Below are positions 1 through 64,000 of a stretch of DNA of 64,000 bases, piece after piece. The DNA lies in assembly GCA_965202585.1 (NCBI GenBank), contig CBDBBG010000090.1:1-64000 (forward strand), written 5' to 3'. The DNA comes from Thalia democratica. Taxonomy: Eukaryota. The first letter of the stretch is position 1, and each line of letters begins with the position of its first letter. Below the pieces are notes generated by a model. The model made no database searches. It was not told where the DNA came from and worked only from the letters and a program-made list of their open reading frames with translations. Position numbers and translations under genes: made by a program.

Positions 1-10
1 ATTTTTTTAG

Positions 11-1403
11 ATGTACCAAATATGAAAAAACCTGAAATCGTGTATGCTTTTAAAATAAATAAGCTTCTCCAAAACGAACATACAGTGGTGAAGATAAGCA
101 AAATCATTTAGACAAATTAACAGTTAAAAATGTTGTCGAATTTTATAGTTTAGCTAAATGTTACAACCTAGCAACTATTTCTAAGTCATCCTTGCTTTTT
201 ATAGAACGTTGTTTTCCAATGGTTGTTGAAACTCAAAACTTTTTAAACTTAGACCTATGTCTTGTTACAAAAATTCTTGAAAGTTCTGAATTAAATAATC
301 AAACAGAAGTTGAAGTATTTAATGCAGTAATTACATGGTTGAAACACAACATTAAAGAACGTAGCAAATATGCAAAACAGTTGTTATTAAAAGTTCGTTT
401 TACATTGCTGTCAAAACCTGCATTAAAGTTTATTTAAAACTGTGATTCAATATTTAGTAAAAAAGCAGATTTTTTTTCAACTAATAAGGAAAGTTTGTTT
501 TAAAAAACTCAAGTCGCATTTATACAAATAGGTATTGTAGTCAACTTAATTTTAATATATTAGTTTGTGGTGGTTATGATGATGAGTCTAATACTAGAGT
601 TGCAAGTGCATAACAAATTTATGGAAGCAATTTAAACAAAATAAAAGCACTTTCCTTAATGAATGAAGAACGATCAAGTTTTGAAGCTGTTTGTATAAAA
701 GAAGAAGTTTACGTATTTGGTGGTCATGATAAACGTGGTACTGATATAATGTCTGTTGAAAAATATTCACCTTCTACTAATGAATGGACTGTAGTAGCTA
801 ATATGTTAGATGAACCCGAGTACTATTGTGTATGTGGATTTATTGAGAAAATTTATGTTTTTGGAGGAAGTTATCATAATGTTGATGATGATGATGACTA
901 TATAATGTTGAATTCATGTCTACAATTTCAAACAAAATACAAAAGTTAGAAAAAATCAGCTGGAATGAATGATGCTAGAGATTCAGCTGCTTGTACAATT
1001 TTTCAAGGAAAAATTTTAGTTTCAGGTGGTGAGAATAATTATGATAATATTATGAACACAGTAGATTCATATGATGTATTTTTTGATAAATGGACACCAA
1101 TGCCTCTTATGACATGTCCTCACTATTTCCACAGTTTAGTTACTATGAAAAAAAAATTATTTGTTATGGATGATGGAAAAAACAGTTGTGAAGTTTTTGA
1201 CAATGTTTGTTGCTCTCAAACTATCTTACGGTTATAGTAATTTTCACAGAGCTATTTCGATTGGAAACAAAGTCATAATTTTTTAAAATTTAATATCATC
1301 AGTAGTTTTTTATGGTGTTGATAAAGATGAATGGTCTGAAGAATCATGTGAAGTTACAAAATATCTTTATAAGTTTTCTTGTACAAAGTTACTTTGGTAT
1401 TAA
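11..1403 (+). pseudogene. BACK-Kelch protein pseudogene (3' exon; upstream exon outside window)
   Basis: Acceptor ttttttag at 1-10, then DVPNM.. collinear with the intact paralogue at 34660-36071 (NVVEFYSLAKCYNL, EVEVFNAVITWLK, VYVFGG, VEKYSP, ILVSGG). Frameshift near 109, in-frame TAA at 435-437 and TAG at 947-949, further shifts, terminal TAA 1401-1403. Confidence 0.9.
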
Positions 1404-3823
1404 TATTATAAACAAGAAGATATGCTCACTAAAAATAAAATTTAAAGATTTGATTTTAAATTTATATTTGTGCATTTTTAAAAATTAATAAATAAATCTA
1501 GCTTAAAGTTATATTTTTTGTTTTTTAACTAATAATATATTAAATATACTATTTTATCGTTGGTTTTTCTATGATTATCATTTTATCTAAAAGTTAAAAA
1601 TATAAATTTACAACATTATTAAATTTTATAAGCAGAACTTATAACTAATTAACAAAAAGATAAGTATTGTCGTTTTAAGAGTTTAAGCAGTGTAAATTAT
1701 TCCAATGTGATAGTTTAAAAAGATTTTTTGTTTTCAAACTTTACCAGCCTACTAAATGTTAGTGTGTTCATTTGCTTTAAACTTATAATATTATAAAGTA
1801 TCTTATATTTTTAACTTTTGTATGAATTCAACTATTAATTATATTTTGTTGTTAAAATAATAGCTTTTTACTATGAGTTTTATTTTGTTTGCTCCTTAAA
1901 AATAGATACCAGTTTTATTTTAAGTTTAGCCTAATGTCTTCTTGAAAGTACAATAAAAAATTACAGATTTTAACATTGAGAATAAATGAGATTTTTTTTG
2001 AATTAATCTAACTGCGTGAAACGATGTTTCGACAATAAGATTAAAAAAATTTAGTTAGTTTAATTTTATCATTTTTATTTAATACAAGTGATTTGACCTT
2101 TAAGTAAAATTTCAGCTATAATATTTATCTGAAGATTTTACTGACTAACATAGGGTTAGACGTTGACCGTTTAGCATATATTTAATCTAACTTTGATGCG
2201 GCTTATAAAGGTAAAAAAATTGACCGACGTGAAACATAATTTGTCCAACAAAAAAAAAACCTTTTAGCTTACACAAGATATTCTTGGTTTTTAAAATAGT
2301 ATTAAAGTCAAGCTCTGAAAGTCAATTAGCGGTAAACAAAATTTAGACTGGGATTATTTAGAATATATATTTCGGGATTAAAAATTTTAAAACTTCCACT
2401 AGATATTCACGCAGTCTAAATAGAGATATAAAATTGGCTACATTTTTTTTGTTACTCAAAATATACATTGGATGTCCTGCAGTTTTTAGTAAAATTATAA
2501 ACTAAAACCTCTATTGCGGTTCGCGTATATATCTTTAATGTTTTGTTGACAACTTTATGAATGCAGACCCCTTGATTAGGGCAACAAATTGTATGGTTAA
2601 TTTGTAAAACATTTAAAACTCTTTTGGTAACATTTTTTCTGTAAATTTGTTTATCAAACAAAAGTTACATTTTTTATAACTTTGAAAAAAAAGTAGACTT
2701 ACAAATTTATATATGTATATTGCATAGATAAAACTCCTTTTTAAGATTAACAATCAAAATCTCTAATAGAACACCTGCTTTTGAGATGAAGATAAATATA
2801 AAATAAAGTAAGTAAAATATGCAAAAGGCATTCTTTAGACACAAAAACCCTTGTAAAATTTGCATATTTTGAAAATATTGTAGTCACGTATGTTGCTATA
2901 TGATAAAAGTTAGATATAGTAATGACTTTTTACTTTGAAATCCTACAAAGAAACGTTCAAAATATTTTAAACTAAACGATTTAGTAAATTGTATACTATG
3001 AACAATAAACGAAAGAAAAATAAAACTTTTAGGGTGAGAAAAGGTTAAATAGGTTTAGATATGATCGGCTCCCATATTAATGACGTCTCATATCGTAAAC
3101 CTAACATAAATAATAAAAGTAAGCTCTTTTCTCTAATTACTTACCAAAGCCTTTAAGAAATCCTGATTTATATGGATATAAGACCTTTTTAATTAAACTA
3201 TTGAAAGTAACTATCGTTAATACCTAGAATTTAAATTTGTATAGAAAACAAAAAAAAAATGTTGTTAGTTAGTAGTTAAAATTTCCTTATTAACTGACTA
3301 AAAATAAGCTTAAAATAGGTTTGAAAACAGTTCTAATAACTACTTTTTGAATTATCTTTATAATTCAAACAATTGATCATCTAGGTAAAATTTCTAGAGT
3401 ATGAAATCAAAGAAAATTATCAATATTAAAATTCAATACTTTTGAGCATAAAAATAGTCATATATTTTCTTATTAACAACATTTTTACAAAATTATTTAA
3501 CTAAACCAATCCAATGAGTGACAACTTTGGTACACGTTATCAAATTGTTATTATACACATTTCTTAATTAGATTTAATTGAGAGATACGGTTACATGACA
3601 ATTTAAGTACTTAAAATGTTAAAGGATATAAGCAAATAAACACATAGTGTATGTTATTAAAAGTATGTCAGTGAAAAATCTTACAAATAGTTTTTAAAAA
3701 CGAAAATTACTGTTCAAAACATGGTTTAGCAACATTTCAAAAAAATTAGCTTAAATAAAAACAATTTGTAAGTTGTGGTCCTTAAAATTGTTTTAATTTG
3801 ATTAGTTGTGCATTTACTTATAA

Positions 3824-19060: not shown

Positions 19061-19820
19061 GTAAGTACAATTACTTAGTATAGTTTTATAAGTTTTGTAG
19101 TAGTTTAATTTAAAGTAATGAGTTTTTGTTTATTCTTTAAACTTTCAATGTTTTAGAGTTTAAGTAATAGTTATTGTTTCAATGTTGTAAATGAGAAAAT
19201 AGACAATAATAGCTAACATTTAAAGTTAAATAACATAACACAGCTTAATTTTTGCAGAGAAGTAGCAGTATTAATAAAAGTGATTCTAGTAAGGTTAGTG
19301 TGATAAAACAGTTATTTTTTACTTAGAGCTAAATTTTATGAGACTTTCCTTACATATAAAACCATGATAAAACAAAGCTTTCTAAACGTGGTGTTATAAC
19401 AATTTCTTAGTAAAGGAAACTATTATTTGTTTATCTACTTTTACAACCTCTAGTATAAGTTAACTTCATTTTTCAGAAAAAAAGCCCTTGTAGTTCTACA
19501 TTTTTTACAGACCAAAGAGACAATTTATATGATATTACTTTTCTATATAATAGTGATATTCGTAAAATTTTGTTAACATAGTCAGCCAGTTTTTAGAAAT
19601 GACTTATTATAACCAGGTAGGTACAGTTTGCAGAGAGAAAGAAATTACAGAACTGAGATCAGGGCAAGGTACTGGTAAGAAATGATTTATTGTGTTTATT
19701 GTTAGAAGTGTTTTTTTAAAAGTTTAATAGATTGGAAAATATAAAATAACATTTGTTTTTAATTAGAAAAATGAAAACTTGAACTTATGCCTTTGATTTT
19801 AAAGTCATGTTTAACATAGT

Positions 19821-20553
19821 ACAATCAGCAGTGGAAAAAGAAGTACAACCAGCTATCAATGGTTGCTTAGTTCATGGAGAAACATCACCATCAGTTCATG
19901 AAGAAATACGACTATCAGTTCATGAAGAAATACCACTATCAGTTCATGAAGAAGTATCACCACCAGTTCATGAAGAAGTATCAACCTCAGTTCATGAAAA
20001 AACATCACCACCACTTCATGAAAGAGTATCACCATCAGTTCATGAAAGAGTATCACCATCAGTTCATGAAGAAGTACCACTATCAGTTCATGAAGAAGTA
20101 TCACTGTCAGTTCACGAAGAAGTATCACCCTCAGTTCATGAAGAAGTATCACCCTCAGTTCATGAAGAAGTATCACTGTCAGTTCATGAAGAAGTATCAC
20201 TGTCAGTTCATGAAGAAGTATCACCACCAGTTCATGAAGAAGTAACACTGTCAGTTCATGAAGAAGTATCACCACCAGTTCATGAAGAAGTATCACTATC
20301 AGTTCATGAAGAAGTGTCACCATCGGTTCATGAAGAAGTATCACCATCGGTTCATGAAGAAGTATCACCATCGGTTCATGAAGAAGTATCACCATCAGTT
20401 CATGAAGAAGTATCACCATCAGTTCATGAAGAAGTATCACCCTCAGTTCATGAAGAAGTATCACCACCACTTCATGAAAGAGTATCACCATCAGTTCATG
20501 AAGAAGTATCACCCTCAGTTCATAATAACAACACAGTAGCTTCATATTTAAAA
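19821..20553 (+). CDS. Exon encoding about 26 tandem SVHEEVS(P/L) octapeptides (loop gene of the foldback element)
   Basis: Acceptor ttaacatag (19820), frame VQSAVEKEVQP..(SVHEEVSP)n..NNNTVASYLK, donor gttagt at 20554 (phase 0); preceded by a 41-nt phase-compatible exon ending at a gtaaga donor near 19673. Confidence 0.7.
19891..20523 (+). repeat. 24-bp minisatellite TCAGTTCATGAAGAAGTATCACCA (about 26 copies)
   Basis: Direct reading of the 24-bp period; variants at the last two codons. Confidence 0.97.
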
Positions 20554-20727
20554 GTTAGTGAGTCGTTGAATAAAATGAATAGTTGCTAATATTGATTAAA
20601 ATTATTAAAGTACTACAACAAATAAGGTTTTTTTTTACTGTACTGTCTTACTGATAGTGACTTATTTTTTTATAGATTATTGCAAATAAAGATAAAGAAG
20701 TTGAAAACTAAAAAATAAGTTGAAACA

Positions 20728-30259: not shown

Positions 30260-31153
30260 ATGTCTATTGAAGCTGAAATTAAAGCATTGGTTGAGTCCTC
30301 CAAAATTGGGAAACAGCTGAAAGAAAAACTGATTGCTATTGGAAGTAAGAAGGACAATGAATTTAGTTGTTTTCAAGCTGAGATGCTTAAATTGAAGGAA
30401 GATTATAATGAAAAAAGTAGAATTATTGAAAATAACATTGATCAGATTCAAAAAGATGAATTCAGCAGTAAGAGAATAGACAATATAGAAAATAGAATTA
30501 CAGAATTACAAAAAAGTTTCTCAGAATTTAAGTCTGATTTTACTTCTAAATTTAACAAGTTTGAAGCTAAATTCTCCAAATATGCTGATGCTATGCAGAA
30601 AAGTGAACCAACAGAAATTATCACAAACATTAGTACCAAATTAAATTTAGTAGCAGAAAAAATAGATGCTGAAAATGAACAAAAACTGAAAGAAAAAAAA
30701 GCTTTAAATGTAATAATATTTAACATTCCAGAAAGTAAAAATCCAACTCATAATGCACTAGAAAGTTGCAAAAATGATCTAAAAATTATTCAACAAGTAT
30801 TAGGAGAAAATAAAATGAAAAAAGAAGAGTTTAAGTCACTTTATCGAGTTGGTAAAATTGCAGCTAACAAAATCAGACCAATTATAGTCAAATTAAATAA
30901 TTTAGCATCCAAACACAGACTGTTAAGACTGAGAGATTTGAAAATGTTTAATGGTGAAATTGAATCAAAAATCTACATCAATCCTGACAGAACTCTCTTG
31001 GAAATTGAAGCTTTCAGAACATTGAGAAAAGAAGTTAAAATAAAGCAAGCCATCGCTGATGAGAATAAATTGGACATAAAATATGTTATAAGGAACAACA
31101 AAATAGTTGAACTGACAAAACAGCCCTTTCGTTACCGCTCCCAGGACATCTGA
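30260..31153 (+). CDS. LINE ORF1p (coiled coil plus RRM/CTD-like)
   Basis: 297 aa; N-terminal heptad-rich region; LNVIIFNIPES, YRVGK..RPIIVKL and IYINPDRT motifs typical of CR1/L2/Jockey-group ORF1. Confidence 0.9.
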   Translation: MSIEAEIKALVESSKIGKQLKEKLIAIGSKKDNEFSCFQAEMLKLKEDYNEKSRIIENNIDQIQKDEFSSKRIDNIENRITELQKSFSEFKSDFTSKFNKFEAKFSKYADAMQKSEPTEIITNISTKLNLVAEKIDAENEQKLKEKKALNVIIFNIPESKNPTHNALESCKNDLKIIQQVLGENKMKKEEFKSLYRVGKIAANKIRPIIVKLNNLASKHRLLRLRDLKMFNGEIESKIYINPDRTLLEIEAFRTLRKEVKIKQAIADENKLDIKYVIRNNKIVELTKQPFRYRSQDI

Positions 31154-34064
31154 GATTAGTGGAGGAAATCGTGAGTCAACGGGTATAAACTTATTAAGTG
31201 ATAGGATTAATTTTAACACTAACAAGTTTTCCTATATAAATTGTAACAAGAACTATTTAAAAGTTTGTTACACTAATATAAGATCTGTTATAAATAAATT
31301 TTATATTTTAGAGAACTATATAAATTTGAATAACATTGATTTATTTTTTCTTACTGAAACATGGTTGACTAATAATGTCAACGATGCCACAGTGTGTCTT
31401 TTTAACTATAACATTTACCGAAGTGATAGGTCTAGTAGGGGTGGAGGTGTTGCTATCCTTTTCAAAAATTCGCTTAAAGTTATTAAAGTTAAAAACGATT
31501 TTATCTCTACTAGCAACATCAATTTTGAATACCTATGTGTAGATGTAATTTTAAAAAAGATGAAGTTAAGATTTTGTTGTGTCTACCTTCCTCCACTGTC
31601 TGCTAGATGCGCACTGACTGTTCAAAATGTAATCAAAATGATTAAAATAGTTTTTCCAAAAGAGTGTTCTTTTTATGTTCTTGGTGATTTTAATATGCCA
31701 AATATAGATTGGAGGATTCCTAGCACAGATTTCAATAAACCCCATGAGTGTTTTCTTAATTTTTGTACAGACAATTTTTTAACCCACGTAATTGAAAATC
31801 CAACCCATAAGAATGGTAACATTCTCGATCTCATAATTTGCAATCATTTTGGTCTAGATAGAATCATATCACACTCAACTAATTTTCCATTAACAAACAC
31901 TTGTGATCATAACTTGCTTTCACTAACAATTAAAATTGAAAACAAAATAACACCTATTGCTAAAGACGTCTCATATGACTATAAAAAAGCAGATTTTGAA
32001 AACATCAATGATTTCCTTTCAAAAATTAATTGGACCTCTTTATTTAAAAATTCAAAAAATCTCCAGCATTTCTACGATCAATTCATTAGCTCAATCCAAA
32101 TCTCAATCAAACGTTTTGTTCCAATTTTTTCTAAAAATAACAAAAGTAAAAAATATCCATCTCATATTAAAAAGTTATTGAAAGAAAAAGTGAATCTATA
32201 CAAAAAAAGTAAGACAAATAAATCACTTTTGATAAAATACAAAAACAAGTCTAAAGAATATCAATTAGCTGTTAAAAAATACAACTTTGAATATGAAAAC
32301 AAATTCTGCAATAACACAAATTTTAAAAAGTTTTGTAGCTACGTGAAATCTAAACTTAAGTTAAATAATTCCATACATCTCTTATATGATAATGATAAAA
32401 ACAAAACAGTAACCTCAGATTTTGAAATAGCAACACTTTTTAACATAAATTTTCAAAAAGTTTTTAAAAAAGACGAGAGTTACCAGTCTTTTAAGCTACC
32501 CCAAAAGAATTGTAGTAAGATGCAAAATTTTTTCATAACCTATGAAGACATTATAAGTTCAATTAACCACTTAAAAGATAAAATCATAAGAACGCCAGAA
32601 AACATTCCACCCTATTATATCAAGCATGTTATCCAATCAATAATTTTTCCACTTTCATTAATATTTAATTGCTCTCTAGAACTATCTGATGTTCCTAAAC
32701 AATGGAAAACATCTTTTATTATTCCTGTGCACAAGAAAGGTAACATACACGATGCATTAAATTACAGACCAATATCTCTAACAAGTGGCTTTTCAAGAAT
32801 TTATGAACATATTGTATCTGTAAAAATTCTCAATCACCTCTTTGATAACAAATTATTAACTAACAAACAGTTTGGTTTTGTCCCAAACCGCTCATCAACC
32901 ATTCAACTGTTAACATGCTTACATTCTTGGTTAGTTCCTTATCTCAAAAATGAATTTACTAAAGTAGTTTATACGGATATTCAAAAAGCCTTTGATTCAG
33001 TATCACACAAAAGATTGTTAAAAATTTTAAATCAGTATGGGCTACATGAAAGCTTAATTGATTGGTTTGATAACTTTTTAAATAATAGATCACAAAGAGT
33101 ACTCATCAATAATACGCTTTCTGACTCTTTAACAATCTACAGTGGAGTACCACAAGGTGGTGTAGTTGGTCCCCTTCTCTTTTTAATTTATATTAATGAT
33201 ATTTGTTCAAACATTGATATTAAAAGTGAGTTAAGCTTATTTGCAGATGATGCCAAAATCTTTAGTCAATCAAATACTTCATTACAACTATCTTTAGATA
33301 ATATTTACATATGGTTAAAAACAAGAAAACTAAACTTAAATCCTAGCAAATGTAAAATTCTAACCATTAACAAAAAAGAATCTTCTCCAACTGACCTATT
33401 AATCAATAACATCAAGTTACCAGAAATTAAAGTTTTTAAAGATTTAGGAATTTATATTTCCAAAGATTTGAAATGCAATAAACATATCAACTATTTATAT
33501 AAGATTGCAAAAATTACATGTTATCAAATATTGAAAAGTTTTAAAACTAATTCTGCTTCAATTCTAACAAAACTATTTAAAACATACGTTCGCCCTAAAC
33601 TTGAGTTTAGTACCCAAATTTGGTCACCCCATTTAAAAAAGGATATTAACAAAATTGAATCTGTGCAAAGGAGTTTTACCCGTCATATTTGTAGTCGTTG
33701 CAACATATCTTACACGTCATATAATGGTAGAATGATTAAATTTGGCTTGAAATCACTAGAATATAGAAGATGGGAATTTGATTTATTAATTCTTTACAAA
33801 ATTATCAATGGCAAATATAAAAGTTTTTTTAACCAGTTTTTTAATTTTTCCCAAAATAATTATCAACTAAGAGGAAATAATTTGAAAATAAAATGTAAAC
33901 ATGATTTTCAAAACAGTCAGTGGCAAGGCGCATTTTTTCACAGAGCAAAAGCTATGTGGAACAGACTACCTCAGGATATAGTATCTTGTGAGAGGGTAGA
34001 ACAATTTCGTTTAAAGCTAAAAAGATTTGATTTAAATACGATAAATACCAGTAAAATTAACTAA
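31116..34064 (+). CDS. LINE ORF2p (APE endonuclease plus reverse transcriptase); no AUG before the endonuclease
   Basis: Frame open from 31116, overlapping ORF1; YTNIRS, LTETWL, GGGVAI, GDFN, CDH; QFGF, DIQKAFDSVSH, GVPQG, FADD; stop 34062-34064. The ORF-track start at 31326 is a TTG inside the endonuclease. Confidence 0.92.
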   Translation, partial: QNSPFVTAPRTSEISGGNRESTGINLLSDRINFNTNKFSYINCNKNYLKVCYTNIRSVINKFYILENYINLNNIDLFFLTETWLTNNVNDATVCLFNYNIYRSDRSSRGGGVAILFKNSLKVIKVKNDFISTSNINFEYLCVDVILKKMKLRFCCVYLPPLSARCALTVQNVIKMIKIVFPKECSFYVLGDFNMPNIDWRIPSTDFNKPHECFLNFCTDNFLTHVIENPTHKNGNILDLIICNHFGLDRIISHSTNFPLTNTCDHNLLSLTIKIENKITPIAKDVSYDYKKADFENINDFLSKINWTSLFKNSKNLQHFYDQFISSIQISIKRFVPIFSKNNKSKKYPSHIKKLLKEKVNLYKKSKTNKSLLIKYKNKSKEYQLAVKKYNFEYENKFCNNTNFKKFCSYVKSKLKLNNSIHLLYDNDKNKTVTSDFEIATLFNINFQKVFKKDESYQSFKLPQKNCSKMQNFFITYEDIISSINHLKDKIIRTPENIPPYYIKHVIQSIIFPLSLIFNCSLELSDVPKQWKTSFIIPVHKKGNIHDALNYRPISLTSGFSRIYEHIVSVKILNHLFDNKLLTNKQFGFVPNRSSTIQLLTCLHSWLVPYLKNEFTKVVYTDIQKAFDSVSHKRLLKILNQYGLHESLIDWFDNFLNNRSQRVLINNTLSDSLTIYSGVPQGGVVGPLLFLIYINDICSNIDIKSELSLFADDAKIFSQSNTSLQLSLDNIYIWLKTRKLNLNPSKCKILTINKKESSPTDLLINNIKLPEIKVFKDLGIYISKDLKCNKHINYLYKIAKITCYQILKSFKTNSASILTKLFKTYVRPKLEFSTQIWSPHLKKDINKIESVQRSFTRHICSRCNISYTSYNGRMIKFGLKSLEYRRWEFDLLILYKIINGKYKSFFNQFFNFSQNNYQLRGNNLKIKCKHDFQNSQWQGAFFHRAKAMWNRLPQDIVSCERVEQFRLKLKRFDLNTINTSKIN

Positions 34065-34408: not shown

Positions 34409-34659
34409 CAACATTGCACAATAAACAATATAATAATAATAATAACTTTAAATCTTAACTACTAGAATTATGCAGAAAACTATTAAACTCTTATAATAAA
34501 AAAAAATTTAATTGTGTTTAATGGACATACCTTTTTTTAATTTATAACTAAAAAAAAACTTAAACTTGTTCGTTAATAATTTTTTATACCTATATAAACG
34601 TTTAGGTCGCTATATATTTTGAGTTTAAATCAATATATTCATTGTACTTTACGAAAGTT

Positions 34660-36071
34660 TTAATACTGAGGCATTTTAGCACATGAGAAACAAAAAAGAG
34701 TATTAGTAGCATCACATGATTCTTCAGACCATTCATCTTTATCAACATCATAACAAACAACTGATGAACGTAATTCTTGAAATATCTTAATTTTATTTCC
34801 GATTGACATAGCTCTACTTAAATGTAAATTGTAAGATGGCTTAAGAGCAACAAATTCCTTACAAACTTTGTCAAATACTTCACAATTGTTATTACGATAA
34901 CCAATAACAAACAATTTATCTTTTATAACAACTAAACTGTGATTAATTTGATTATTTATCATACTGGGCATTCTAGACCATTTATCACCGAATACATCAT
35001 AAGATTCTACTGTGTTTAAATAATTATTATCATTATCCATTCCACCTGAAACAACAATATTTCCTTGAAAAACTACGGAAGCTGGTAAATCTCTTGATTC
35101 ATTCATTCTAGAAACTTGTTTCAGGCTTTTGTCTTTTGTATTAAATCGCAAACAAGAATTCGTTACTATCACTTCATAATCATCATCATACCAGTGTCCA
35201 CCAACGATAAATATTTCATTCATAAATGCACAAGTACAAAAATGTTCACGTTCATCAACCATATTAGTTACTACAGTCCATTCATTAGTAGCAGGTGAAT
35301 ATTTTTCGACTAATTTTATTAATTTATCAGAATTATCATAACCACCAAACATATAAAGTTCTCTTTTGAAACAAACAGCTTCAAAGTATGCTCTACATTC
35401 ATTCATTGAAACAAGGTCCTTCGCATTATTCATGTTACTTCCATCAATTTGTTCTATTTTACTTAATGTTTTATTTGATCTATTGACATAATTTCCACAA
35501 ATTAACAAGTCAAAATTACTTTGGTTACAATACCTCTTTGTGTAAAAAATGTTTGACTTGTTTTTAAAGCAGTTCTTGGCTGCCAAATCTTCTTTTAAAA
35601 TGATGACACTTTTACAGTTATCAGTAATTGATGAAATTTTATCTATAATATATTTCAATGCATGCTCTGACAGCAAAGGAAGTCTGACTTTTAGTAACAA
35701 TTGTTTTGCATATTTGCTACGTTCTTCAAAGTTAAATTTCAACCAAGTAATTGATGCATTGAAGATTTCAACTTCTGAGTGAATATTCAACTCAGAACTT
35801 GCAAGTATTTTTTCAACAAGACTAAAGTCTAATTGTAAAAAGTTTTGAGTTTCAATTACCATTGAAAAACAACGTTGAATATAAAGCAAGGATGACTCAG
35901 AAATAGTTGCTAGGTTGTAACATTTAGCTAAACTATAAAATGCAACAACATTTTTAACTCTTAATTTGTCTTGAATGACTTTGCTTATCTTAATAATTGT
36001 ATCCTCTTTTTGTAGAATCTTATTCAATTCTAAAGCTAAAACTATGTTATTTTCTTCCATACTTGGTACAT
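34660..36071 (-). CDS. Kelch-like protein exon 2 (end of degenerate BTB, BACK, Kelch repeats)
   Basis: Intact frame; acceptor ttgttttag at 36073-36072, phase 1 (G|AT); BACK motifs (NVVAFY, SEVEIFNASITWL, VRLPLL) and GG-type Kelch repeats (LYMFGG, IFIVGG, IVVSGG). Confidence 0.92.
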
Positions 36072-36836
36072 CTAAAACAAAATTAATAGGTATAAATATT
36101 ATCTTTGTAAAATTGCTTAGAATTATTGATACATTTTAAGACCTAGAAACATGGTTGCCACTCAAAAAGCTGAGAAGAATTTCCTGACTTTTCCTGACTT
36201 TTTCCTGACTTTTTACAAAAGTTTTCCTGACTTTTCTAAATCAAACTCTTTAATTAGACTTATTCTAAAATACATAATCTAACACTTAAAACTATATAAA
36301 ACTTCCAATCTAACTTTAATACAGGTTAAAAACAACAGTTTTTCGCTGAATTCTATAATCAAACTTCCAGTACATCACTTAAACCATCTGTGTATGATTG
36401 ATGTTTGTAATAAACAGCTCTATCAGCAAAATTCTTGTATTTTTACCTTATAAACACAGCTTGTTTGAAAAACGAAACAATTTTTTAGCAAATCCTAGCA
36501 TAAATGTATCTAGATAAACAAACTACATATAAGGAACTTTTACAATTAAAACTTTGAATTAATAACGAACTTTCACAACTAAAATCTTAAAACAATAACA
36601 AATTTTTACAGTTGAAACCTTAAAACAATAAAGAACACAATTTTTTAGAATTTTGTAGTATAAATGTATCTAAATGAACGAAACGACATATAAGGAACTT
36701 TTACAATTAAAACCTTAAATTAATAAGGAACTATCACAACTCAAACCTTAAAACAATAACGAACTTTTACAGTTAAAACAAAAAAACAATAAAGAAATTA
36801 ATCAAATACTGTTTTTTTAAATTTATGTACTAAAAT

Positions 36837-39800
36837 TTATTTTCTCCGTTTTTTTATTAGCACTTCAACCTCTTCATCTAATGAAGTCATGGTTTTCTTC
36901 ATCTGGTCTGCATTCCGCTTCATTTTCTTGGCAGTTAAAATCATTTCCCCCATTTTATTTAAATCACTCTAATCTGCTGCCGCTACACTTGTTAAAGAAA
37001 ATCTTTTCTCTAAATCAAGCCACAACTTGTGGGCTTCATTTCTTTTTTTTTTTGGCACTCATTTATTTTTACCTCCAATTTTGCTGCCTCTGATTCCTCC
37101 TCATCTTCCATTTCTTGCCTTTGTTCTTTTAAAATGCTTGATATCTGATAAAAAAAATCTATATTAAAAGTATACTTAAACGAATTTTAATTATAAAATA
37201 TTACTCTAACACCAAAACACAACACTCAAAAATATACAACATACCTTGATCTTGCGGTGGCTACCGACATCTGCATATCTTTTGAGACGTTTACTTGATA
37301 TGGTTTTAGTTTGTAAGCATACATGTAGTCTTTAATTCATCTTCTTGATATAATACTTTCTTCTTTCATCTTATCTTCAAACAGAGCTTTATTAATGCTA
37401 AATCCTCGTTCCACCTCCGCCTGTCCATTGTGCAAAACAAACAATGATTGCAGTAGTTTTCCGAGAGAAGATTTGGTACAAACTCCCAATGTTTCAAAGT
37501 AAAACTGATCCAAACGATCTTGACTTCGCTTGAAACTTTTAAACTTTAATACATTAATTGGGCAATTTATCAAAGTTCTAAAATGATCGATGCTTTCATC
37601 TCCTTCAGTGTTGGAGCACATTTTTTGTTTCGTTAAGGTGTGGACAATACTGACAAAACGCTTAACCAGAACTGTGACTCCTAATTTGTCTAGGTTATGA
37701 GGATTTAGGCATGACATATCTTTAATAAATGTAGTTCCAATAGCCATTCTGCTTCGGAGACTTTCAACGGCTTTTATAATAAATACTCTACATTCTTATT
37801 AAAATTTAAGATCTTTTGTTCCTCAACTAGGTCTTTTTTTCTTAAATTTGAAAGCAAATTGGTTGCTGCACAACCAAGATCATAGGCAGGTTTCAGGAAA
37901 GCTTGATCATTTAATTCAATCTTGAATAACTTGGGAAGGCTGAGGTTCGAAACTACCCCGTCTTTCATAAAGATACATAGCAGTTTAATTACCAAGCACG
38001 AAATGTCCTCATCCATAAAAGCAACAACAGGCTGGGTACTCTAGTATAGAGTTAAAAAAGGTAGCATGAGAGATGCTAAATAACTAAAGAAATGTATCTT
38101 TACTAAGACAAGATAATCAGCCACTGCATCCCTTACGACTCGGTAACATCTGCTGTCAGGACATTTACTCTTTGGACCTAACTGCCAAACTTGACAAAAA
38201 ATTTTAATGTTTGGCCAAATTTCGATTGCACGATCAGCCACTATCTTATCGTCAAGCCAACGAGTTTTACAAAACGAAAACGGAAAAATTTTGCTACCGG
38301 TTATTGACTTGTAGTCCGTTCTCCATCCTCCAGCTTTTTAAAAAGTTTTAAAAGACTTTTAAAAACGTCATCCAGCTTCCAGTTGGTAGCGTCAGCTCCA
38401 AGCTCAAAAGCTCTATGAGCAATGTGGAGACTGTGGCTACCAATGTTTATAAGCTCACTCAGGTCCTTTTCTTTCCTATAGTCCCTTATTTTTCTATACA
38501 TGGACCAATTTGAATTTGGTCCGTCCATACTTATCTGGGCCAGTTTTGATTCATCTTAAGGCTGTAAAGCTGAAAGAAGGCTTTTTTTTGAGGTCCTCAG
38601 CGGTGGTATGACCCAAAAACTTTGTAGTTAAGTATTGTGAAACCACTCTGTTGTTAAACATGTATCGAACTACAATATCCATTTGGGTCTTATTGATAAT
38701 GTCATTGTAGCTTTCATCAAAAGATACACTGTACCACCTGGATTTTTTAATTGCTTCCAGCAAGATGTTTTCAAAATATGGTCCGAGGCCAAAATTTATC
38801 GTGTATGACTGTGCTATTGCACTGTCAGGAAACATCTTTTTGTTCAGCTCCGCCAGTTTGTTACACGAACTGCCTGAGTAATTGTGCTTGACAGTGTGTA
38901 ATAATAATAATAATAAGGCCCGCTATCAGCCGAGATCGGCTTTGCGTGTTGTGCACAGAGAAGAAAAAAAATATAAAAATAAAATAATTACATGTTTAAA
39001 AACAAAAAACAATTAAATTCATTCTGCTTCTTATTTCTTCATCTTCTTCTTCGTTTTTCTAAAATATTCCTTTTCTCTTTCTTGCAGTCTTTTGTGTATA
39101 GTTGATCTCCATTTGGCACGGTCATTTGCAAGCAACTCCCAATCATCAGTTCCAATGTTCAAGCTTTTTAGGTCGCGCTTGCATACATCCTTAAAACGTA
39201 ATTTTGGATGTTCTCGGTTTCGTTTGCCAACGACCAACTCGCCATACAATAGAAACTTTGGGATCCGCTCAGTATTCATTCTCAGGATATGACCGAGCCA
39301 GCGAAGCCTGCGCTGACTGAGGGTAAAGTACATAGTGGTAAGACCAGTACGTCTCAATACTTCCTCATTGGTGATCTTTTGCTGCCATGTAATTCCAAGG
39401 ATGCGACGAAGGCATCGTAGGTGGAAGGTATTGATTTTCTTCTCCTGTATGCTAGGTAACGTCCATGTCTCGCTACCGTAAAGCAGAGTACTGCAGACAC
39501 AGGAACGGTAAACGTTAGCCTTTGTTCGAATACTTAGCTTTTGGTTATCCCAAACTCTTGCAGTTAAGCGAGCGAAAGTGCCTGATGCTTTGCCAATGCG
39601 ACTATTTATTTCTTTGTCAAATGATGCGTTTGACGCGACATTTGAGCCAAGGTATACAAAGTTATATCCTTACAGTTGATCTTGATTGATGGTAAAATAT
39701 TTGTTCCTTGACTTAGAATTTTAGTCTTCTTAAGGCTTATAGTAAGGCCGAAATCCGAGCATGCCGAAGAAAACTGATTTAGCAGTGTCTGCAGGTCTTG

Positions 39801-40273
39801 GGCAGAGTGAGCCACGAGCGCAGCATCGTCAGCAAATAAAAGATCACGTATGGTTACTTTCTTCAGATTTCGCTTAGCTCTTAGATTTGAAGGGTTGAAA
39901 AGGTGACAGTGTGTAATACCCATAAAATTTCAGCGGTTGTGGTTTGTGACTTACTTACCGAACCTATTGATGGGCTTACACCACTGCTCTCACAACTTGT
40001 TACTCTGCCGCTGCTCTCATCACTTACCCCACTGGAGCTTGATCCAGCATTATAGAAAAATTATTGGATTTGGTGAGCTCCTGGTCTTTTATTTCTATGT
40101 CCAGCTCCATTCATATGTACAGTGAGTGCTTTTCTTCCCATATTTGACAGTGACAGAGTACATGAACACCACTTGCATTTAAAATTCTTTTTATCATCAT
40201 CATCTTTAATGAGCCATTCAGAAAAATCTTTTTCAGAAAGCCAAGAATTCTTGAAATATGTAAACTTTGGCAT
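36837..40273 (-). pseudogene. Decayed hAT-like transposase
   Basis: BED-like finger (WL..FKCKWC..LSNMG..ALTVHM..GH), AEILWVL..MFPDSAIA, SVSFDESYN (D), MDGPN (D), HNGQAEVERGFS (E); multiple stops and frameshifts; interrupted by an RTE fragment. Confidence 0.85.
38904..39903 (-). mobile_element. 5'-truncated RTE-clade LINE fragment
   Basis: LLFADDAALVAHS..FGLTISLKKTK and RRLRWLGHILRM..IPK.LLYGEL..GKR..KLRFKDVCKRDLK; (ATT)n tail; 15-bp TSD TGACAGTGTGTAATA (38889-38903, 39904-39918). Confidence 0.92.
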
Positions 40274-57730: not shown

Positions 57731-58009
57731 CTGTTAATGAGTGAAAATAAGGTTATTACTTGAATACAAATAATCTTTTACATATTCATAATTTGTATTT
57801 ATTTATTTATATCGTCATTTTAATCTTAAGAAATTTAATTTATATTTATGCTTGATCATAACGATACGGATAAGATAAACACGATTGAAATAATAAGTTA
57901 TTAAACATGTTTCAAAAAACTTAAAACACACTAACATAAGAAAAAATCTTCATATGTTTAAGTTATTATTAACAATAAAGTAGATGAGCATTAAAAAAAA
58001 ATCACTCAC

Positions 58010-59455
58010 TATCAATAATATCCATCAGATCATCTAAAAGTGAATCTTCATCATTAATTTCGTTGTTTATATAATTACTTTGGGTATTTACTGATGTAAA
58101 TGCAGTTTCTTTACTTGGATTATTGAAAACAGGATCATTATTTGTCTCCATGTAATTGTGATGACCCTCATGGTCAATCTGTGGTAAACTTAAATTATTT
58201 TTATTACTAAACAATACCCCACTTCTATGACTTCCATTGTTGTTTTTAATAGTGAGTTCTCGTAGTTCTTTGCTATTGTCTGATTCTAGCTGATTTCTTG
58301 GTTTCTTAAAGCTTGTGCTTTGATCATCAACTAAGTTATTTTTACTCTTTTTATATCTTTGATGTTTAAACCAATTATTAATTTTTACTATATCCACCCC
58401 AAGATCTATGCTAATTCTTTTCCTATCATCTAAACTTGGGTTTTTGCATTTTTCATACTCCATTTTCAAAATGGCTGTATCATCACAAGAAAACTTTTTA
58501 TACTTTTTTTGTTTAGAATAGTTTCTTCCTCCTGCTCTTTTAGACATGAACCAAAAATGTACTCTGAGCGCATAAACGCCAAGCTCTTTGCTAATTCTTA
58601 ACTTCTCTTCAGTACTTGGATACTTACATTTTTCATACTCCCTCTCCAAAAATTTTATCTCTTCAGAAGAAAAAGGTATATGCTTTTGTTTTCCATCGTT
58701 CTTCTTTTCTTTACAACTAGTATCTAGTTCTTTATTCGCATTGTAACGTCTATTGTAAAACCACTTGTATATTGTTATAACATCTATACCTAAATCACTG
58801 CTCAGTTTTTCTATTTCTTCTCTGTTAAGTTTCTTGTTAACTTTTAAAACCATATCAAGGGCTTCTTGCTGATATTGGTTAAAATATTTTTTTGAAGCGG
58901 ACTGAGCACGTCTACTTTTGAAGTATTTGTTTGTGTCATTTACGTCTAATTCTAAATCATTGCTAAGTTTTTCTATTTCTTCTCTGTTTGGCCTATGGTT
59001 TGTATTGAAAAACATATCAAGCTTTTCTCGCTTGTTTTGGTTAATTATTTTATTAGAAGTGTTACTTTTTCTCTTAAGGCTCTGTCTTTTGTTATTAAAC
59101 CATGTTTTTAAAGATTTTTCCGTTCGTTTTGTCTTAAGACTCAAACTTTTGATGTCTATTTTGCTAGGTTTGGATTTTTGTTTGAAAAAATCTTTCAAAA
59201 TTTTTTCTTGCCATGGTTTCAATGTTATATGTTCGTTGTGTTTTACTGTTTCTTCTTGCACTAGAGGTTGGTATTCAGTTTCTGTTCCTTTGTTTGAAGT
59301 ACTTGACAATGCTTGACTTACTTGAACACCTGGAAAATTATGAAGTTTGTTAGAAGTTGTCTGATCTACACATATCAAGGAAGAAGGCAAATAACTTATT
59401 TCTGGTATTAATTTGTCATCCGCTTTAGACTGACTGCTATCTGTGCTGCATGATC
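58010..59455 (-). CDS. Internal exon encoding five tandem divergent homeodomains
   Basis: Helix-3 motifs WFNNKR, YFKSRR, WFYNRR, WFMSKR and WFKHQR, each preceded by F..-L..-P/L-..-LS..LG spacing; acceptor tatatag 59457-59456 (phase 1); donor A|GTGAGT at 58009. No in-frame ATG before HD2, so an upstream exon is required. Confidence 0.88.
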
Positions 59456-59530: not shown

Positions 59531-59630
59531 NNNNNNNNNNNNNNNNNNNNNNNNNNNNNNNNNNNNNNNNNNNNNNNNNNNNNNNNNNNNNNNNNNNNNN
59601 NNNNNNNNNNNNNNNNNNNNNNNNNNNNNN
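59531..59630. other. Assembly gap (100 N)
   Basis: Run of N. Confidence 1.
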
Positions 59631-59687
59631 ACTGATTCAAAAACATCAAAATTCTCATTTGAAAACATTTAATCAAGAGCATTCAGT

Positions 59688-61187
59688 TCATGACTTTTGG
59701 TCTTCCTTCATAAGTGGCTTGTAAAGCACGTCCCTAATACTATTGGAACCAGTCAGCAGCATCAGCAACCTGTCAACTCCCAACCCCCATCCAGCGCAAG
59801 GAGGCAGTCCGTACTCAAGAGCAACACAGAAATCCTCATCATGCTTCACTGCTTCCTCATCCCCCAACTCCTTCATTTCCACCTGTCTCATGAACATATC
59901 CCTCTGAACAACAGGATCGTTCTGCTCAGTGTAGCAGTTCACCATTTCCATACCCTCTATATACAATTCAAATCTCTCAGAGACCCCTGGCCTGTCCTTG
60001 CATTCTTTTGCCAGTGGGCTCATCACATGGGGGTGGTTTGTGATGAAAGTGGGTTTTGTTAAGTTTTTGACAATAAAGTGGTCACAGAGTTTGTCTAGCA
60101 TCCTTGATGTGGTCTGAGGTTCAGGGCAGCTCACGGAATGGATCTGGCAGATTTCTAAAAGTCTTGTTCTGGATTCTTCTGTATGAAGTTCTTTTGGATC
60201 TGGTAGTTTGACGCCCATTTGTTTCTCCAGTTCAGGCATCATGTCAACTCTTTCAAAAGGAGTTTCAAGGTTATACTCTGGGCGGATTTCTTTGAAAATT
60301 CTAGCAAAGAGTTCTTCTGTCATGTGCATCAAATCATGGTAATCAGAATAAGCTTTGTAAGCCTCGCAAATTGTGAACTCTGGATTGTGTGATTTGTCCG
60401 CGCTCTCATTCCTGAAAACCTTGCCAATCTCAAAAACCCTATCAAATCCACCTACTAACATTTCTTTCAACCTCAGTTCAGGTGAGACTCTGTTGTACAG
60501 GTTCATCTTGAGGTCGTTGTGGAAAGTTTGGAAAGGTTTTGCTGCTGCTCCGCTTGCCACAGTTGACAGAATAGGAGTGGAGACTTCACTGAAGTTTTCC
60601 TTGTTGAAAAAATCACGGATTATTGAATTGAGTTTGGTTGGCACCAGCATTTTCTCATAAGAGGACTTGTTGACAATGGTGTCCAAGTACCTCTGCCTGT
60701 CTCTCAGTTCCTTGTTCTCCAGCTGTTCAGGTATGACCCTGGTGCAAGGAGCCAGCAGTTCAAGTTGATGGGGTATTATGCTCAACTCACCCATTTTTGA
60801 CTTTGCAGCAAAACCGCTGACTCCAATGTGATCACCACGCTTTATTTTGTCAACATCTGTGTGGAAGTCGTCTTCAGATTTGTACCAACTGCAGTTTGCC
60901 ATCACCTGCAACTTGTGATTGTTTGACTTGATGGTGTAAAAAATTAGCTTCTTGCCAGCCTTTCTCACCGACATGACTCTGCCTGCCAACTTGCACTTTT
61001 CTTCAAAAAGTTTGTCCCCGCTTTTTGTCATGTTATCATATTTGCAAATGTAGTCTTGTATTGAGTGTGAGCATGAGAATTTGTTGGAGTAGGGATTCAC
61101 ACCTTGCTGCTTCATTTGTGATATTTGCTTGCTTCTTTCAATGTGGTAAACTTTTGCTTTGTCAAGGATGTCATCTTTGGTGGTTAC
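59688..61187 (-). CDS. KARS1: Class II lysyl-tRNA synthetase, eukaryotic cytosolic type, divergent, single 1.5-kb exon
   Basis: OB-fold (AGRVMSVRKAGKKLIFY, LQVMAN, GELSIIP), GAAAKPF.T.HNDL, motif 2 FEIGKVFRNE..HNPEFT.CE.Y, MSPLAK, ERFEL, motif 3 LEYGLPP.AGWGLGVDRL. Frame extends 24 codons above the ATG to acceptor ttttatttaag (61189-61188). Symbol denotes family, not proven orthology. Confidence 0.93.
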   Translation of the reverse strand, partial: VTTKDDILDKAKVYHIERSKQISQMKQQGVNPYSNKFSCSHSIQDYICKYDNMTKSGDKLFEEKCKLAGRVMSVRKAGKKLIFYTIKSNNHKLQVMANCSWYKSEDDFHTDVDKIKRGDHIGVSGFAAKSKMGELSIIPHQLELLAPCTRVIPEQLENKELRDRQRYLDTIVNKSSYEKMLVPTKLNSIIRDFFNKENFSEVSTPILSTVASGAAAKPFQTFHNDLKMNLYNRVSPELRLKEMLVGGFDRVFEIGKVFRNESADKSHNPEFTICEAYKAYSDYHDLMHMTEELFARIFKEIRPEYNLETPFERVDMMPELEKQMGVKLPDPKELHTEESRTRLLEICQIHSVSCPEPQTTSRMLDKLCDHFIVKNLTKPTFITNHPHVMSPLAKECKDRPGVSERFELYIEGMEMVNCYTEQNDPVVQRDMFMRQVEMKELGDEEAVKHDEDFCVALEYGLPPCAGWGLGVDRLLMLLTGSNSIRDVLYKPLMKEDQKS

Positions 61188-61360
61188 CTTAAATAAAATA
61201 AAACCACTTTGTATTTGTTAGAGTTAATTAACTTGTACTAATTAACAAGCTCATACTTGAAACATCTTTTTAAGCTAAACTGGTATTTTTTGGCTTTGAG
61301 GAAATTCATTACAAAAAAAGAAGTTAGCTTATTTTCAGAATTTAAATTTGCAAACATAGT

Positions 61361-61552
61361 CAAGGTTGCAACACACTCAGAATAGTTTTCAGATATCTGA
61401 AAATCTCTGGCCAGTTTTTAGTGAATTTTGAATGAGATATAGTTGATTTAGATTCAATACTTTAAAATTTTATAATCAATTTAATTAAACAACTTATCAT
61501 TAATGTTAAACAACTTATTTTAAGATTTTTGACTCAAAGAGTGGCAACCTTG
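61361..61552. mobile_element. Short MITE with CAAGGTTGC TIRs, 6-bp TSD
   Basis: CAAGGTTGCAAC...GTGGCAACCTTG; flanks catagt/cattgt (5/6). Confidence 0.75.
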
Positions 61553-62759
61553 CATTGTACTTGAAGAAATAATACTTTTTTATCAATCTCAATAAAGTCA
61601 TAGAAGCTTCTTTAATTAGAAGTTTAACTAAATTCATCAAAATAATTTAAACAAATAAAAAGTTGGAAACTATTTAATAAAAATCTCAAAACGTAACGTG
61701 TAATGTTGTAGCCAACTAGGTTGAAGATTTTCAAAATAATTATACTTTGCATTAAATGTAGCTTAAAACCTTTTTTGTTTTTTCTTTAATATGATTTAAA
61801 TACTTTTAGAGAAACTATAATAAATATACCTTATTAGTAGTTGAAATGGCACGCAAAGTAGATTTTGTGTCAAATACTTTCCATAATGATTTTTGAACCG
61901 ATTTTAACATAACCAATTTATTAATTTCTGAAAAAAATATATCTTACAGTTTTATTAAAACAAACAAGTAATTAGGAAAGATACACTATTTCAATTGTCT
62001 TTTAATATTTAAAAGAATGTACACCACAAGTTTTTACCTTAGTGTTAAAAATAACACATTAGATTTTTTTTTCATGTACTATTTTAGCGAGCATTAGTTA
62101 TTATAACTATTAATTCCAGATAATATATTTTCCAGTAGCCTTTAAAATGCTTCTTTTTTTAGTTTAACAACTGACTGTGTATACAACAAACAAAAATCAT
62201 ATTTTTATATTACATTTACTAGACATCATTGAATTGGCTTTTGTATTATTGATAACTTATACACAAAACTAAATAGTAAAAAATGTAATTGCTTTGATCA
62301 AAAAAAATATTTTAGTTAAGTTTTTGAACATATGTTAAAAGTGATAACTTTACTTTAGTCATTAATTTGAAAAAAAACAGTTTTGCTTTACATCTGGAAC
62401 TATTTTTGTTTTTATTTTGTCAACCATTTTTTAATTTGTGTTATAATACTCATCATAACAAAATAATGTATTTTAATTTTAATAATAAGATTGATAGTAA
62501 ACTGTATCTTAAATACATATATTTTTAACTCGAATTTTAAAATTTTTTGATGATTAAAAAAATTTAGAGCTCTTAATAAGAACGGTGAAATGCAAAGTAA
62601 AAACTTCTATCTGAAAATAAAATCTGTAAATTGTAATAAAAGAGGGCTGAAAAAATATATACTTTTAGTCAGTTTTAAAATATTTAAGATATCTAACAAT
62701 GAAAAAACTAAGGTCCATATTTTTGTTTTGTAAAATTCAGTTTTTTTTTTTGTGTTTTT

Positions 62760-63660
62760 TTAATAAAATTTTTATTTTTTTTAATTTTTTCAAACTTTGT
62801 TTCTACATAATTTTCTAAATATTGCAAGGAACATTTCTTGAAAATTTCAAGTAGTTATCGTTAAAAACGTAGGAGAAGATAGATTTTTAGTTATTTGCCG
62901 TTTTAGTTTGTGCCTCCCATAAGGAACTTATTGTTGCCTTTGATTGGCTATATTTCAAAAACTATTTTGGGTAATTTCCTAGGATGATTTCGCACTAATA
63001 TCAAAGTGAAAATATTTTACACTTTCAATTTTATACTTTGATACGATAATTATAGAGTTGAAATATAAGGTACACAATTACTCAAATTTGAACAGAAAAC
63101 TTTTATAAATAATTTATAACATAGTTATTTTTTTTTCTATCATCATGGTTAACCCTAACCCTTACACTTGATTGGTAGCTTTTTTTTGTGTTTTTATTTT
63201 AATTTTTTTAGTATTCTTTTTAATAATAATCTATATTATTATTTTTTTCATTATCACTGCTACCTCTAACTCTTATTCTTGATCTGTAGCTTTTTTTTTT
63301 GTTTATAAGTCTATCATTTAGTTTTAATTTTTAAATAATTTTTATTAGTTTTAATTTTACTATCACTCATACCCCTAACCCTTACCCTCGAATCTCGATC
63401 AGTAGCTTTGTTTTTATCAATCAAAAATTTTGTTAAGATTTAGAGCTTTTCATTTCTATACTCGTCTTATCATAGTGTAAAATTAAAAGTGTAAAATGTT
63501 TTCACTTTACCCTATTTTGATATCCTAGGAAATTACCCAATTTTGATTTTTAAATCTGTAAAAAGCATCTTGTAGCTTAGTAAAAACTTTTTAAAATAAG
63601 ATCAAATTGTAAAATCAAATTGTGAAAAAAAGTGTTTCACACCCCACCCACCTAATGCCC
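62760..63660. mobile_element. Right half of TTAA-family palindromic MITE, interrupted by a second element
   Basis: aaggaacatttcttgaaa, ttttagtttgtgcctcccataagg and terminal cctaatgccc match the 13902-14468 right arm on both sides of 62969-63538. Confidence 0.75.
62969..63538. mobile_element. MITE with GGGTAATTTCCTAGGAT TIRs (about 90 bp imperfect) and probable 6-bp TSD
   Basis: GGGTAATTTCCTAGGAT...ATCCTAGGAAATTACCC; flanks tatttt/aatttt; three diverged ~115-bp internal units with CCCTAA-like motifs. Confidence 0.8.
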
Positions 63661-63695
63661 TTGACAGACTTATAAAAGTAGCAATAAGATGTATT

Positions 63696-64000
63696 CAGGT
63701 TTGCCAAATGTTTTTGGCAAATTTATTTTAAAGTTTAAAATTTTCCTCCAGGCTTTTAAAAGTACACATTTGTTGTTCTATTTTTAGTTAAAAGTTTAGT
63801 TTAAGGTAAAAATATGTGTTAAATAGCATAAAAATATTGAAAAGAAACTGTAAAGCTACTTTAAATTTATTTTTCATAAAAAAAAATTATCTATTTGGTA
63901 AATTTTTGTGTCAAATCAAAATTTTTCTACTAAACATCTTAAGATTGTTTAAAATTCCAGGTTTTTCCAGTTTATTTTTTCACAAATTCTAGGTTTTTCC
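63696..64000. mobile_element. MITE of the 3824/6008 family, runs off the window end
   Basis: CAGGTTTGCCA start; gtgttaaatag, actgtaaagctactttaaat, tttttgtgtcaaatcaaaattt and aaattccaggtttttccag shared with 6008-6421. Confidence 0.8.

Follow-up and report, generated by a model that had tools for sequence, protein, structure and literature searches.

A divergent, lineage-restricted lysyl-tRNA synthetase gene with a presequence-like first exon in an AT-rich genome

Gene model, predicted enzyme and leader peptide

The stretch analysed here, positions 1 to 64,000 of contig CBDBBG010000090.1 (hereafter the window, meaning the whole of these 64,000 nucleotides), carries on its minus strand, between positions 59688 and 61910, a gene for a predicted lysyl-tRNA synthetase (LysRS). 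Judged from its sequence and from that of its relatives, this gene is real, resident, old, lineage-restricted and fast-evolving, and it is of the eukaryotic class IIb type. The available evidence also supports the view that the predicted enzyme is functional, aminoacylation activity being expected because the relevant residues are intact and the ratio of non-synonymous to synonymous substitution (dN/dS) is 0.08. In the reading that we prefer, and to which about an even chance is given, the gene is a resident LysRS of an AT-rich marine planktonic eukaryote, present as a lineage-specific second copy that would serve the mitochondria. The parts of the predicted gene are as follows, L001 and L002 being two marine metagenome contigs that carry relatives of it:

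61928..61940, minus strand: pyrimidine run followed by CAG, acceptor-like, 18 nt ahead of the start codon, read from the sequence
61830..61910, minus strand: coding part of exon 1, ATG plus 26 codons ending AAG/GT, phase 0, with a homologous exon in L002
61188..61829, minus strand: intron of 642 nt, GTATAT...TTTAAG, GC 0.237, acceptor kept in L001 and L002
59688..61187, minus strand: exon 2, the LysRS body, 499 open codons plus a TGA stop at 59690..59688
61113..61115, minus strand: first in-frame ATG of exon 2, codon 25, kept in L001, a possible alternative start
60753..60992, minus strand: anticodon-binding OB fold, exon-2 residues 66-145 (PF01336, E 3.2e-11)
59715..60713, minus strand: class II catalytic core with motifs 1-3, exon-2 residues 159-491 (PF00152, E 3.1e-79)

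The first-pass annotation of this DNA had described the gene as intronless, a description that has to be abandoned in view of the second coding exon (61910..61830), the 642-nt intron and the preservation of this structure in L002. The stop-to-stop frame of exon 2 reaches only 10 codons past its acceptor and offers no ATG before codon 25, and exon-2 codons 1-24 match the first helix of the human LysRS anticodon-binding domain and are conserved at the protein level in the relatives. The acceptor reads TTTAAG/G (61188/61187), and in L001 the acceptor AG sits within an in-frame TAG, so that the frame cannot continue upstream there either. The exon 1 of L002 comprises 28 codons (L002:1878-1961), lies upstream on the same strand, with 388 nt between it and the equivalent acceptor, and also ends AAG/GT in phase 0, and the exon-1 peptides of the window and of L002 are identical at 12 of their first 18 residues (tblastn E 3e-4 within the L002 contig). 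Thus, the presence of exon 1, its phase-0 junction and its conservation in L002 indicate that the gene has at least two coding exons and a predicted product of 526 residues. A pyrimidine run with CAG comparable to that of the window precedes the ATG in L002 as well (L002:1822-1833), and the acceptor-like site at 61928-61940 could belong to an intron in the 5' untranslated region or to spliced-leader trans-splicing. A lysine-rich open reading frame (ORF) at 62708-62827 was considered as a cytosolic N-terminal exon and rejected, as it sits within a dispersed repeat.

The body encoded by exon 2 displays the domain order typical of a class IIb lysine-tRNA ligase, with an N-terminal OB domain followed by the class II core (Pfam), and the protein scores 502.4 bits against the TIGR00499 equivalog model, for which the cutoff is 427.6. 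The human LysRS structure 6chd aligns across residues 7-498 (E 1.4e-147). Motifs 2 and 3 retain all the residues that bind lysine and ATP, both in the window protein and in its L001 relative, so that the alignments uphold what the first-pass annotation had read from the sequence in this respect. Conservation was further assessed over 109 near-invariant columns, defined as those conserved in at least 97% of 112 canonical eukaryotic-type LysRS. The window protein keeps 97 of these columns and the L001 protein 96, compared with at least 101 in each of the canonical sequences, although the same sequences also served to define the columns; the 12 altered positions of the window protein exceed the number found in any of the 112, and none of them is a motif 2 or motif 3 residue lost by L002. 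The stretches FRNESADKSH, PELRLK and VLYKP, pointed out earlier as departures from normally invariant sequence, are indeed present, and the insertion-domain segment, also described as shortened, is ~15-17 residues shorter than its human counterpart.

Cytosolic eukaryotic LysRS carries a lysine-rich N-terminal tRNA-binding extension of ~40-70 residues. No extension of this kind was found in the window gene: exon 2 begins where canonical residues 39-73 align (as read from the spider, wasp and rotifer proteins), and only a leader of 27 residues precedes it. This leader looks like a mitochondrial matrix presequence. The exon-1 peptides of the window and of L002 each have a net charge of +5, a single residue among the 55 of the two peptides together is acidic as compared with 13.5% in host ORFs (P = 0.003), serine and threonine make up 19 of the 55, and the helical hydrophobic moments are 0.62 and 0.72, values reached by 2.9% and 0.05% of shuffles, respectively. 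These properties suggest that the product may be localised to mitochondria.

In its class IIb OB fold and catalytic core, with the motif 2/3 residues kept, the window protein resembles animal KARS1 (PDB 6chd, 3bju), and its leader is comparable to the distinct N-terminus through which a product of the single KARS1 gene can reach mitochondria. On the other hand, it is just ~46-47% identical to animal KARS1 and lacks the lysine-rich extension, its leader lies on an exon of its own and its body in a single exon, and it differs by the 12 near-invariant changes in 109 columns and by the ~15-17 residues missing from the insertion-domain segment. With giant-virus LysRS the window gene has the enzyme class alone in common.

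Relatives, selection and base composition

A search of 5.8 billion proteins returned as closest relative a protein of 91% amino-acid identity (P0001), carried on L001, an ENA metagenome contig of 1678 bp that shares the acceptor, has a 3' flank of GC 0.21, and in which no conserved A-run was seen; among 1.84 billion representative proteins, the L001 protein is the sole relative above 50% identity. The next relative, P0061, with about 50-52% identity, is carried on two Tara Oceans contigs with AT-rich flanks, at L002:1878-3812 and L003:391-1854, and the remaining matches do not exceed 49% identity. Two other matches of 51-52% identity were rejected as relatives, being canonical fish-like LysRS. 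The best named matches to the window protein are all cellular eukaryotes, a scan of JGI metagenomes gave only matches of 24-26%, and a scan of the 2.9 million viral contigs of IMG/VR gave nothing related. The species of the window is itself seen in Tara Oceans data, as contig L005 matches positions 34522-37182 at 98% nucleotide identity, non-coding DNA included. The gene is present in at least two to three related genomes, always in AT-rich DNA, and instead of the patchy presence expected of a transferred gene, it is carried by L001, L002 and L003 with a shared exon structure.

The L002 gene has diverged furthest. It keeps 60 of the 109 near-invariant columns and scores 248 bits on TIGR00499, below the cutoff; missing from it are the glutamate of motif 2, the stretch His-Asn-Pro-Glu-Phe and a pair of catalytic glutamates. 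Its frame is nevertheless still open over 487+28 codons in DNA of 35% GC, with the presequence-like exon and the intron position kept, and it may be a non-catalytic pseudo-synthetase. Since these catalytic residues are lost, the L002 lineage must have another LysRS, and if the L002 gene is orthologous to that of the window, as the common exon structure suggests, the family would be additional to the primary enzyme.

Comparison of the window gene with that of L001 gives a dN of 0.053, a dS of 0.645 and a dN/dS of 0.082, values from which strong purifying selection on the coding sequence is evident. The earlier proposal that the enzyme works gains from this ratio, as it does from the kept catalytic residues and from the TIGR00499 score (502 bits against 428), and the gene can be regarded as a probable functional synthetase.

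The marked GC contrast between the gene and its surroundings, which had drawn attention to the locus, is real. GC across the ORF ranges from 0.38 to 0.48 (mean 0.434), compared with 0.18-0.32 in both flanks and 26% for the whole window, and it falls to ~0.25 at the acceptor and to 0.263 past the stop; the sharp return to AT-rich DNA that had been described at the acceptor coincides with the TTTAAG/G junction. The flanks comprise the following features:

59531..59630, no strand: assembly gap of 100 N between the LysRS contig and the remainder of the window
59631..59687, minus strand: 3' untranslated stub, AT-rich (GC 0.263), with an ATTAAA hexamer at 59673..59668
62739..62978, no strand: dispersed repeat of the upstream flank, common to 8.5-15.4 kb (blastn 69-87% identity, E down to 6e-40)
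63540..63662, no strand: dispersed repeat, common to 8.7-14.4 kb (blastn 78-86% identity)
63737..64000, no strand: dispersed repeat, common to 3.9-6.3 kb and 46.7 kb (blastn 71-74%, E down to 3e-38)

The upstream flank (61188-64000) is contiguous with the gene and has 15 high-scoring segment pairs with other parts of the window (3.9-15 kb and 46.7 kb), so that the first-pass statement that the upstream flank is continuous with the gene and bears the window's own repeats is correct. On the other side, the gap begins 57 nt past the stop codon, the gene sits on a contig spanning 59631-64000, and the link to the neighbouring homeobox gene and to everything further left rests on scaffolding.

The GC content of third codon positions (GC3), a comparison that the first-pass annotation had called for, is 0.505 in exon 2 as against 0.20, 0.26 and 0.25 in the Kelch, five-homeodomain and retrotransposon ORFs of the window, respectively. 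The L001 gene has a GC3 of 0.523, although it is separated from the window gene by a dS of 0.65, and the degenerate L002 copy one of 0.31. According to a two-state estimate, if third positions had decayed neutrally toward the local GC (0.23), the ancestral GC3 would have to have been ~0.77 for the L001 split alone; a GC3 of ~0.5 in both species therefore indicates that the composition is maintained and is not the fading signature of an import. The excess is also specific to certain codon classes. Codons of the two-fold pyrimidine-ending families end in C in 65% of cases in the LysRS gene as compared with 22-31% in the other ORFs, and 44% of the lysine, glutamate and glutamine codons end in G, whereas just 34% of the four-fold codons end in G or C, GCC and CCG are unused, the arginine codons are AGA and AGG, those that the host uses, and the observed/expected ratio of CpG is 0.26, at the host level or lower. 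In summary, it is chiefly the two-fold codons ending in C that raise GC3. This pattern is a better fit to an expressed gene of housekeeping type whose codon preference is maintained than to a donor that was uniformly richer in GC, and together with the equally high GC3 of L001 it speaks against the earlier interpretation of the composition as that of foreign DNA.

Exon 1 departs from exon 2 in this regard, its GC3 being 0.26 (7 of 27 codons) against 0.505 (P = 0.008). Codon bias is usually weak at the 5' ends of genes. The low value in exon 1 is compatible with a chimeric origin, but it could also reflect a weak bias of this kind.

A second GC-richer block is found at 37.3-40.2 kb (37300-40200), with a GC of 0.36-0.47, and consists of fragmentary transposable element remnants with several stops or frameshifts, among them hAT-type transposase-like pieces (read from ORFs) and a C-terminal fragment of a reverse transcriptase from a long interspersed nuclear element (LINE). 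The LysRS gene is thus not the sole compositional island of the window.

Origin, likely role and rival explanations

The window protein is 44-49% identical to animal, plant, fungal and protist LysRS, in comparison with 55-67% among the canonical enzymes themselves. In neighbour-joining trees with bootstrap, built from 53 and from 158 sequences, the window, L001 and L002 proteins form a clade with 100% support, and no donor clade was found in either tree. The sister of this clade shifts between bootstrap replicates and is always a long branch, the best candidate being recovered in 35% of replicates, and the long branches that attract it are those of Tritrichomonas and Trimastix, the second spider copy and the Silene copies. 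Residues specific to bilaterians are matched at one of eight positions, which are too few columns to decide.

With regard to the way in which the body arose, a retrocopy origin is plausible, because the exon-2 body runs across all the intron positions mapped in the wasp gene and in those portions of the rotifer gene that were mapped, because the window intron is offset, lying ~12-14 codons upstream of the nearest intron common to these two genes, and because the top named match, a spider LysRS, is itself intronless. The possibility that the window intron is ancestral was set aside since it does not coincide with this nearest intron, which, with two comparators, is weak evidence. The value of a long single exon as a retrocopy hallmark is limited by the other genes of the window, which are also long single exons; the Kelch ORF of 1.4 kb and the homeobox ORF of 1.39 kb are likewise uninterrupted, contrary to the first impression that such a length is unusual in this genome.

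Extra copies of LysRS are known from other lineages. Larinioides sclopetarius, a spider, and Silene latifolia likewise possess lineage-specific extra copies, and the best named match of the window protein is spider copy P0002, of 570 residues, encoded by one uninterrupted exon (L014, CAXIEN010000262.1). The second spider copy, P0510, is far more divergent and keeps 78 of the 109 columns, while the Silene copies keep 91. The two spider copies thus demonstrate that extra, intronless LysRS copies do occur in animals. The spider and Silene copies group with the window clade unstably, as long branches and with no specific relationship to it, and P0002 retains the N-terminal extension, which the window gene does not. 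Pett and Lavrov 2015 described a single LysRS lineage in animals, an older mitochondrial paralogue having been lost before animals diverged, which would leave them with one KARS gene serving cytosol and mitochondria alike; this opisthokont paralogue is present in choanoflagellates, mitochondrial synthetases generally evolve faster, and the vertebrate mitochondrial ThrRS has been restored by duplication of the cytosolic enzyme (PMC4558845). The likeness of the window gene to the opisthokont mitochondrial LysRS and to the vertebrate mitochondrial ThrRS would lie in a eukaryotic-type duplicate, specialised for mitochondria and evolving faster.

According to the preferred reading, the copy would have been born by duplication within the lineage, most economically as a retrocopy truncated at its 5' end, to which a new first exon was then added. 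Exon 1 would supply a short, basic, amphipathic leader and exon 2 the full anticodon-binding and catalytic body; the resulting LysRS of 526 residues would be imported into mitochondria and would charge tRNA-Lys there, while a separate canonical KARS would serve the cytosol, and the GC-richness would correspond to maintained codon usage, with its C-ending two-fold codons, and not to a recent foreign origin. The status of second copy is supported indirectly, by the presequence-like exon that stands in place of the extension, by the 12 changes in 109 columns and by the catalytic loss in L002. The host is probably an animal, as it looks animal-like because of its 60-residue homeodomains, its BACK-Kelch genes and its APE-type LINE.

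Several points weigh against this reading. The second-copy status is deduced from such indirect signs, and the retention of 97 of 109 columns, suggestive of an extra copy as it may be, is not decisive, since the window protein falls with this value among some probably primary protist enzymes (89-99; Cavenderia 99). The L002 gene may be a paralogue rather than an orthologue. The presequence test consists of simple heuristics (charge, acid content and hydrophobic moment against shuffles), and AT-rich DNA will by chance alone also be expected to encode peptides rich in lysine. Both the splicing of exon 1 to exon 2 and the expression of the gene are predictions from genomic sequence, and the Tara transcript-derived proteins in the databases gave no match to the gene. 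In addition, neither the window nor the Tara loci hold a housekeeping gene that could serve as GC3 comparator, and no poly(A) remnant or target-site duplication of a retrocopy is visible, the 3' end entering the gap 57 nt past the stop.

The explanation that competes most directly, which we consider unlikely though worth keeping in view, is that this is the sole LysRS gene of a fast-evolving lineage and that it uses two starts, the mitochondrial form beginning at the ATG of exon 1 and the cytosolic form at the internal ATG (61115). Strong constraint and a CpG depletion like that of housekeeping genes would suit such a role, L001 shares the internal ATG, a single LysRS lineage is the rule in animals (PMC4558845), and no second LysRS piece was found within the window. 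However, the internal methionine is not conserved in L002, whose gene is catalytically degenerate yet open, so that this lineage has another LysRS, and the missing N-terminal extension and the 12 near-invariant changes, more than in any of the 112 canonical sequences, fit a sole enzyme poorly. A retained old opisthokont mitochondrial paralogue, in place of a new duplicate, would also explain the presequence-like exon, and is consistent with the roughly equal distance of the protein (44-49%) to animal, fungal, plant and protist enzymes, with the match at just one of eight bilaterian-specific residues, and with the description of such a lineage and of elevated rates in mitochondrial synthetases (PMC4558845). 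We hold it to be improbable, as the searches returned no comparator from the opisthokont mitochondrial lineage and nothing links the two, as the 1.84 billion representatives contain no match above 50% identity except L001, and as the host is animal-like in its homeodomains of 60 residues, its BACK-Kelch genes and its APE-type LINE.

Horizontal transfer from another eukaryote or from a giant virus, followed by fusion to a host-derived first exon, had been put forward in the first-pass annotation and appears very improbable. It would account for the GC3 of 0.505 as against 0.20-0.26 in the other ORFs of the host, for the host-like GC3 of exon 1 (0.26, P = 0.008), for a body devoid of introns and for a clade without close cellular relatives, but no support for horizontal or viral transfer emerged from the comparisons: no donor was found, the sister group being unstable and made up of other long branches; nothing related occurs in IMG/VR or in the JGI metagenomes; the gene is shared and old, predating the L001 split (dS 0.65) and probably the L002 split as well, with its GC3 undecayed; and the GC excess is specific to codon classes in a gene that is depleted in CpG and uses AGA/AGG for arginine as the host does. 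A more elaborate version, in which an animal lineage anciently captured a foreign LysRS body, either from a virus or from a eukaryote not yet sampled, joined it to a host presequence exon to make a mitochondrial LysRS, and saw the gene turn non-catalytic in a sister lineage, is likewise very doubtful. That the gene is a contaminant, or was joined to the scaffold as a chimera, is barely credible; the 100-N gap lying 57 nt past the stop would permit it, whereas 2.8 kb of AT-rich flank bearing the repeats of the window adjoin the gene without a break, and the same exon-intron junction and AT-rich flanks recur in three independent assemblies.

If the preferred reading is correct and the host is an animal that also has a canonical KARS, the gene would represent an independent re-creation of a dedicated mitochondrial LysRS, and in the sister lineage this gene would be seen drifting to a non-catalytic form, which would make it a useful but modest case of the rewiring of synthetase localisation. 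In a more general sense, high GC and few introns do not by themselves mark a gene of an AT-rich genome as foreign.

Neighbouring genes and repeats of the window

On the far side of the N gap, close to the LysRS gene, lies a single-exon ORF (58002-59390, minus strand) of 462 residues with five homeodomains (Pfam), these being of the typical 60-residue length. Single-exon ORFs with BACK and Kelch domains, and with no BTB domain in the ORF, are located at 34660-36060 (minus strand) and at ~2-1405 (plus strand); they belong to a family whose paralogues form more than 100 clusters (40-65% identity), every one of them on ENA/Tara marine metagenome contigs. A non-LTR retrotransposon occupies 30260-34064 (plus strand) and comprises an ORF1-like frame and an uninterrupted ORF2 of 912 residues with endonuclease and reverse transcriptase, of the APE type. 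Searches with this ORF2 and with the Kelch ORF gave near-identical matches only on ENA/Tara Oceans contigs, the named matches of ORF2 being just nematode proteins at ~30-33% identity, and a copy 98% identical in ENA contig L004 indicates that the element has probably been active recently in the lineage. Scanning the window against Rfam and for tRNA genes gave no match. Finally, a tandem array of 24-nt units at 19807-20589 would encode repeats of ~8 residues rich in Ser-Pro-Ser-Val-His-Glu-Glu-Val; the array, of which both strands are open, has no Pfam match and combines a GC content of 0.69 at first codon positions (GC1) with a GC3 of 0.10.

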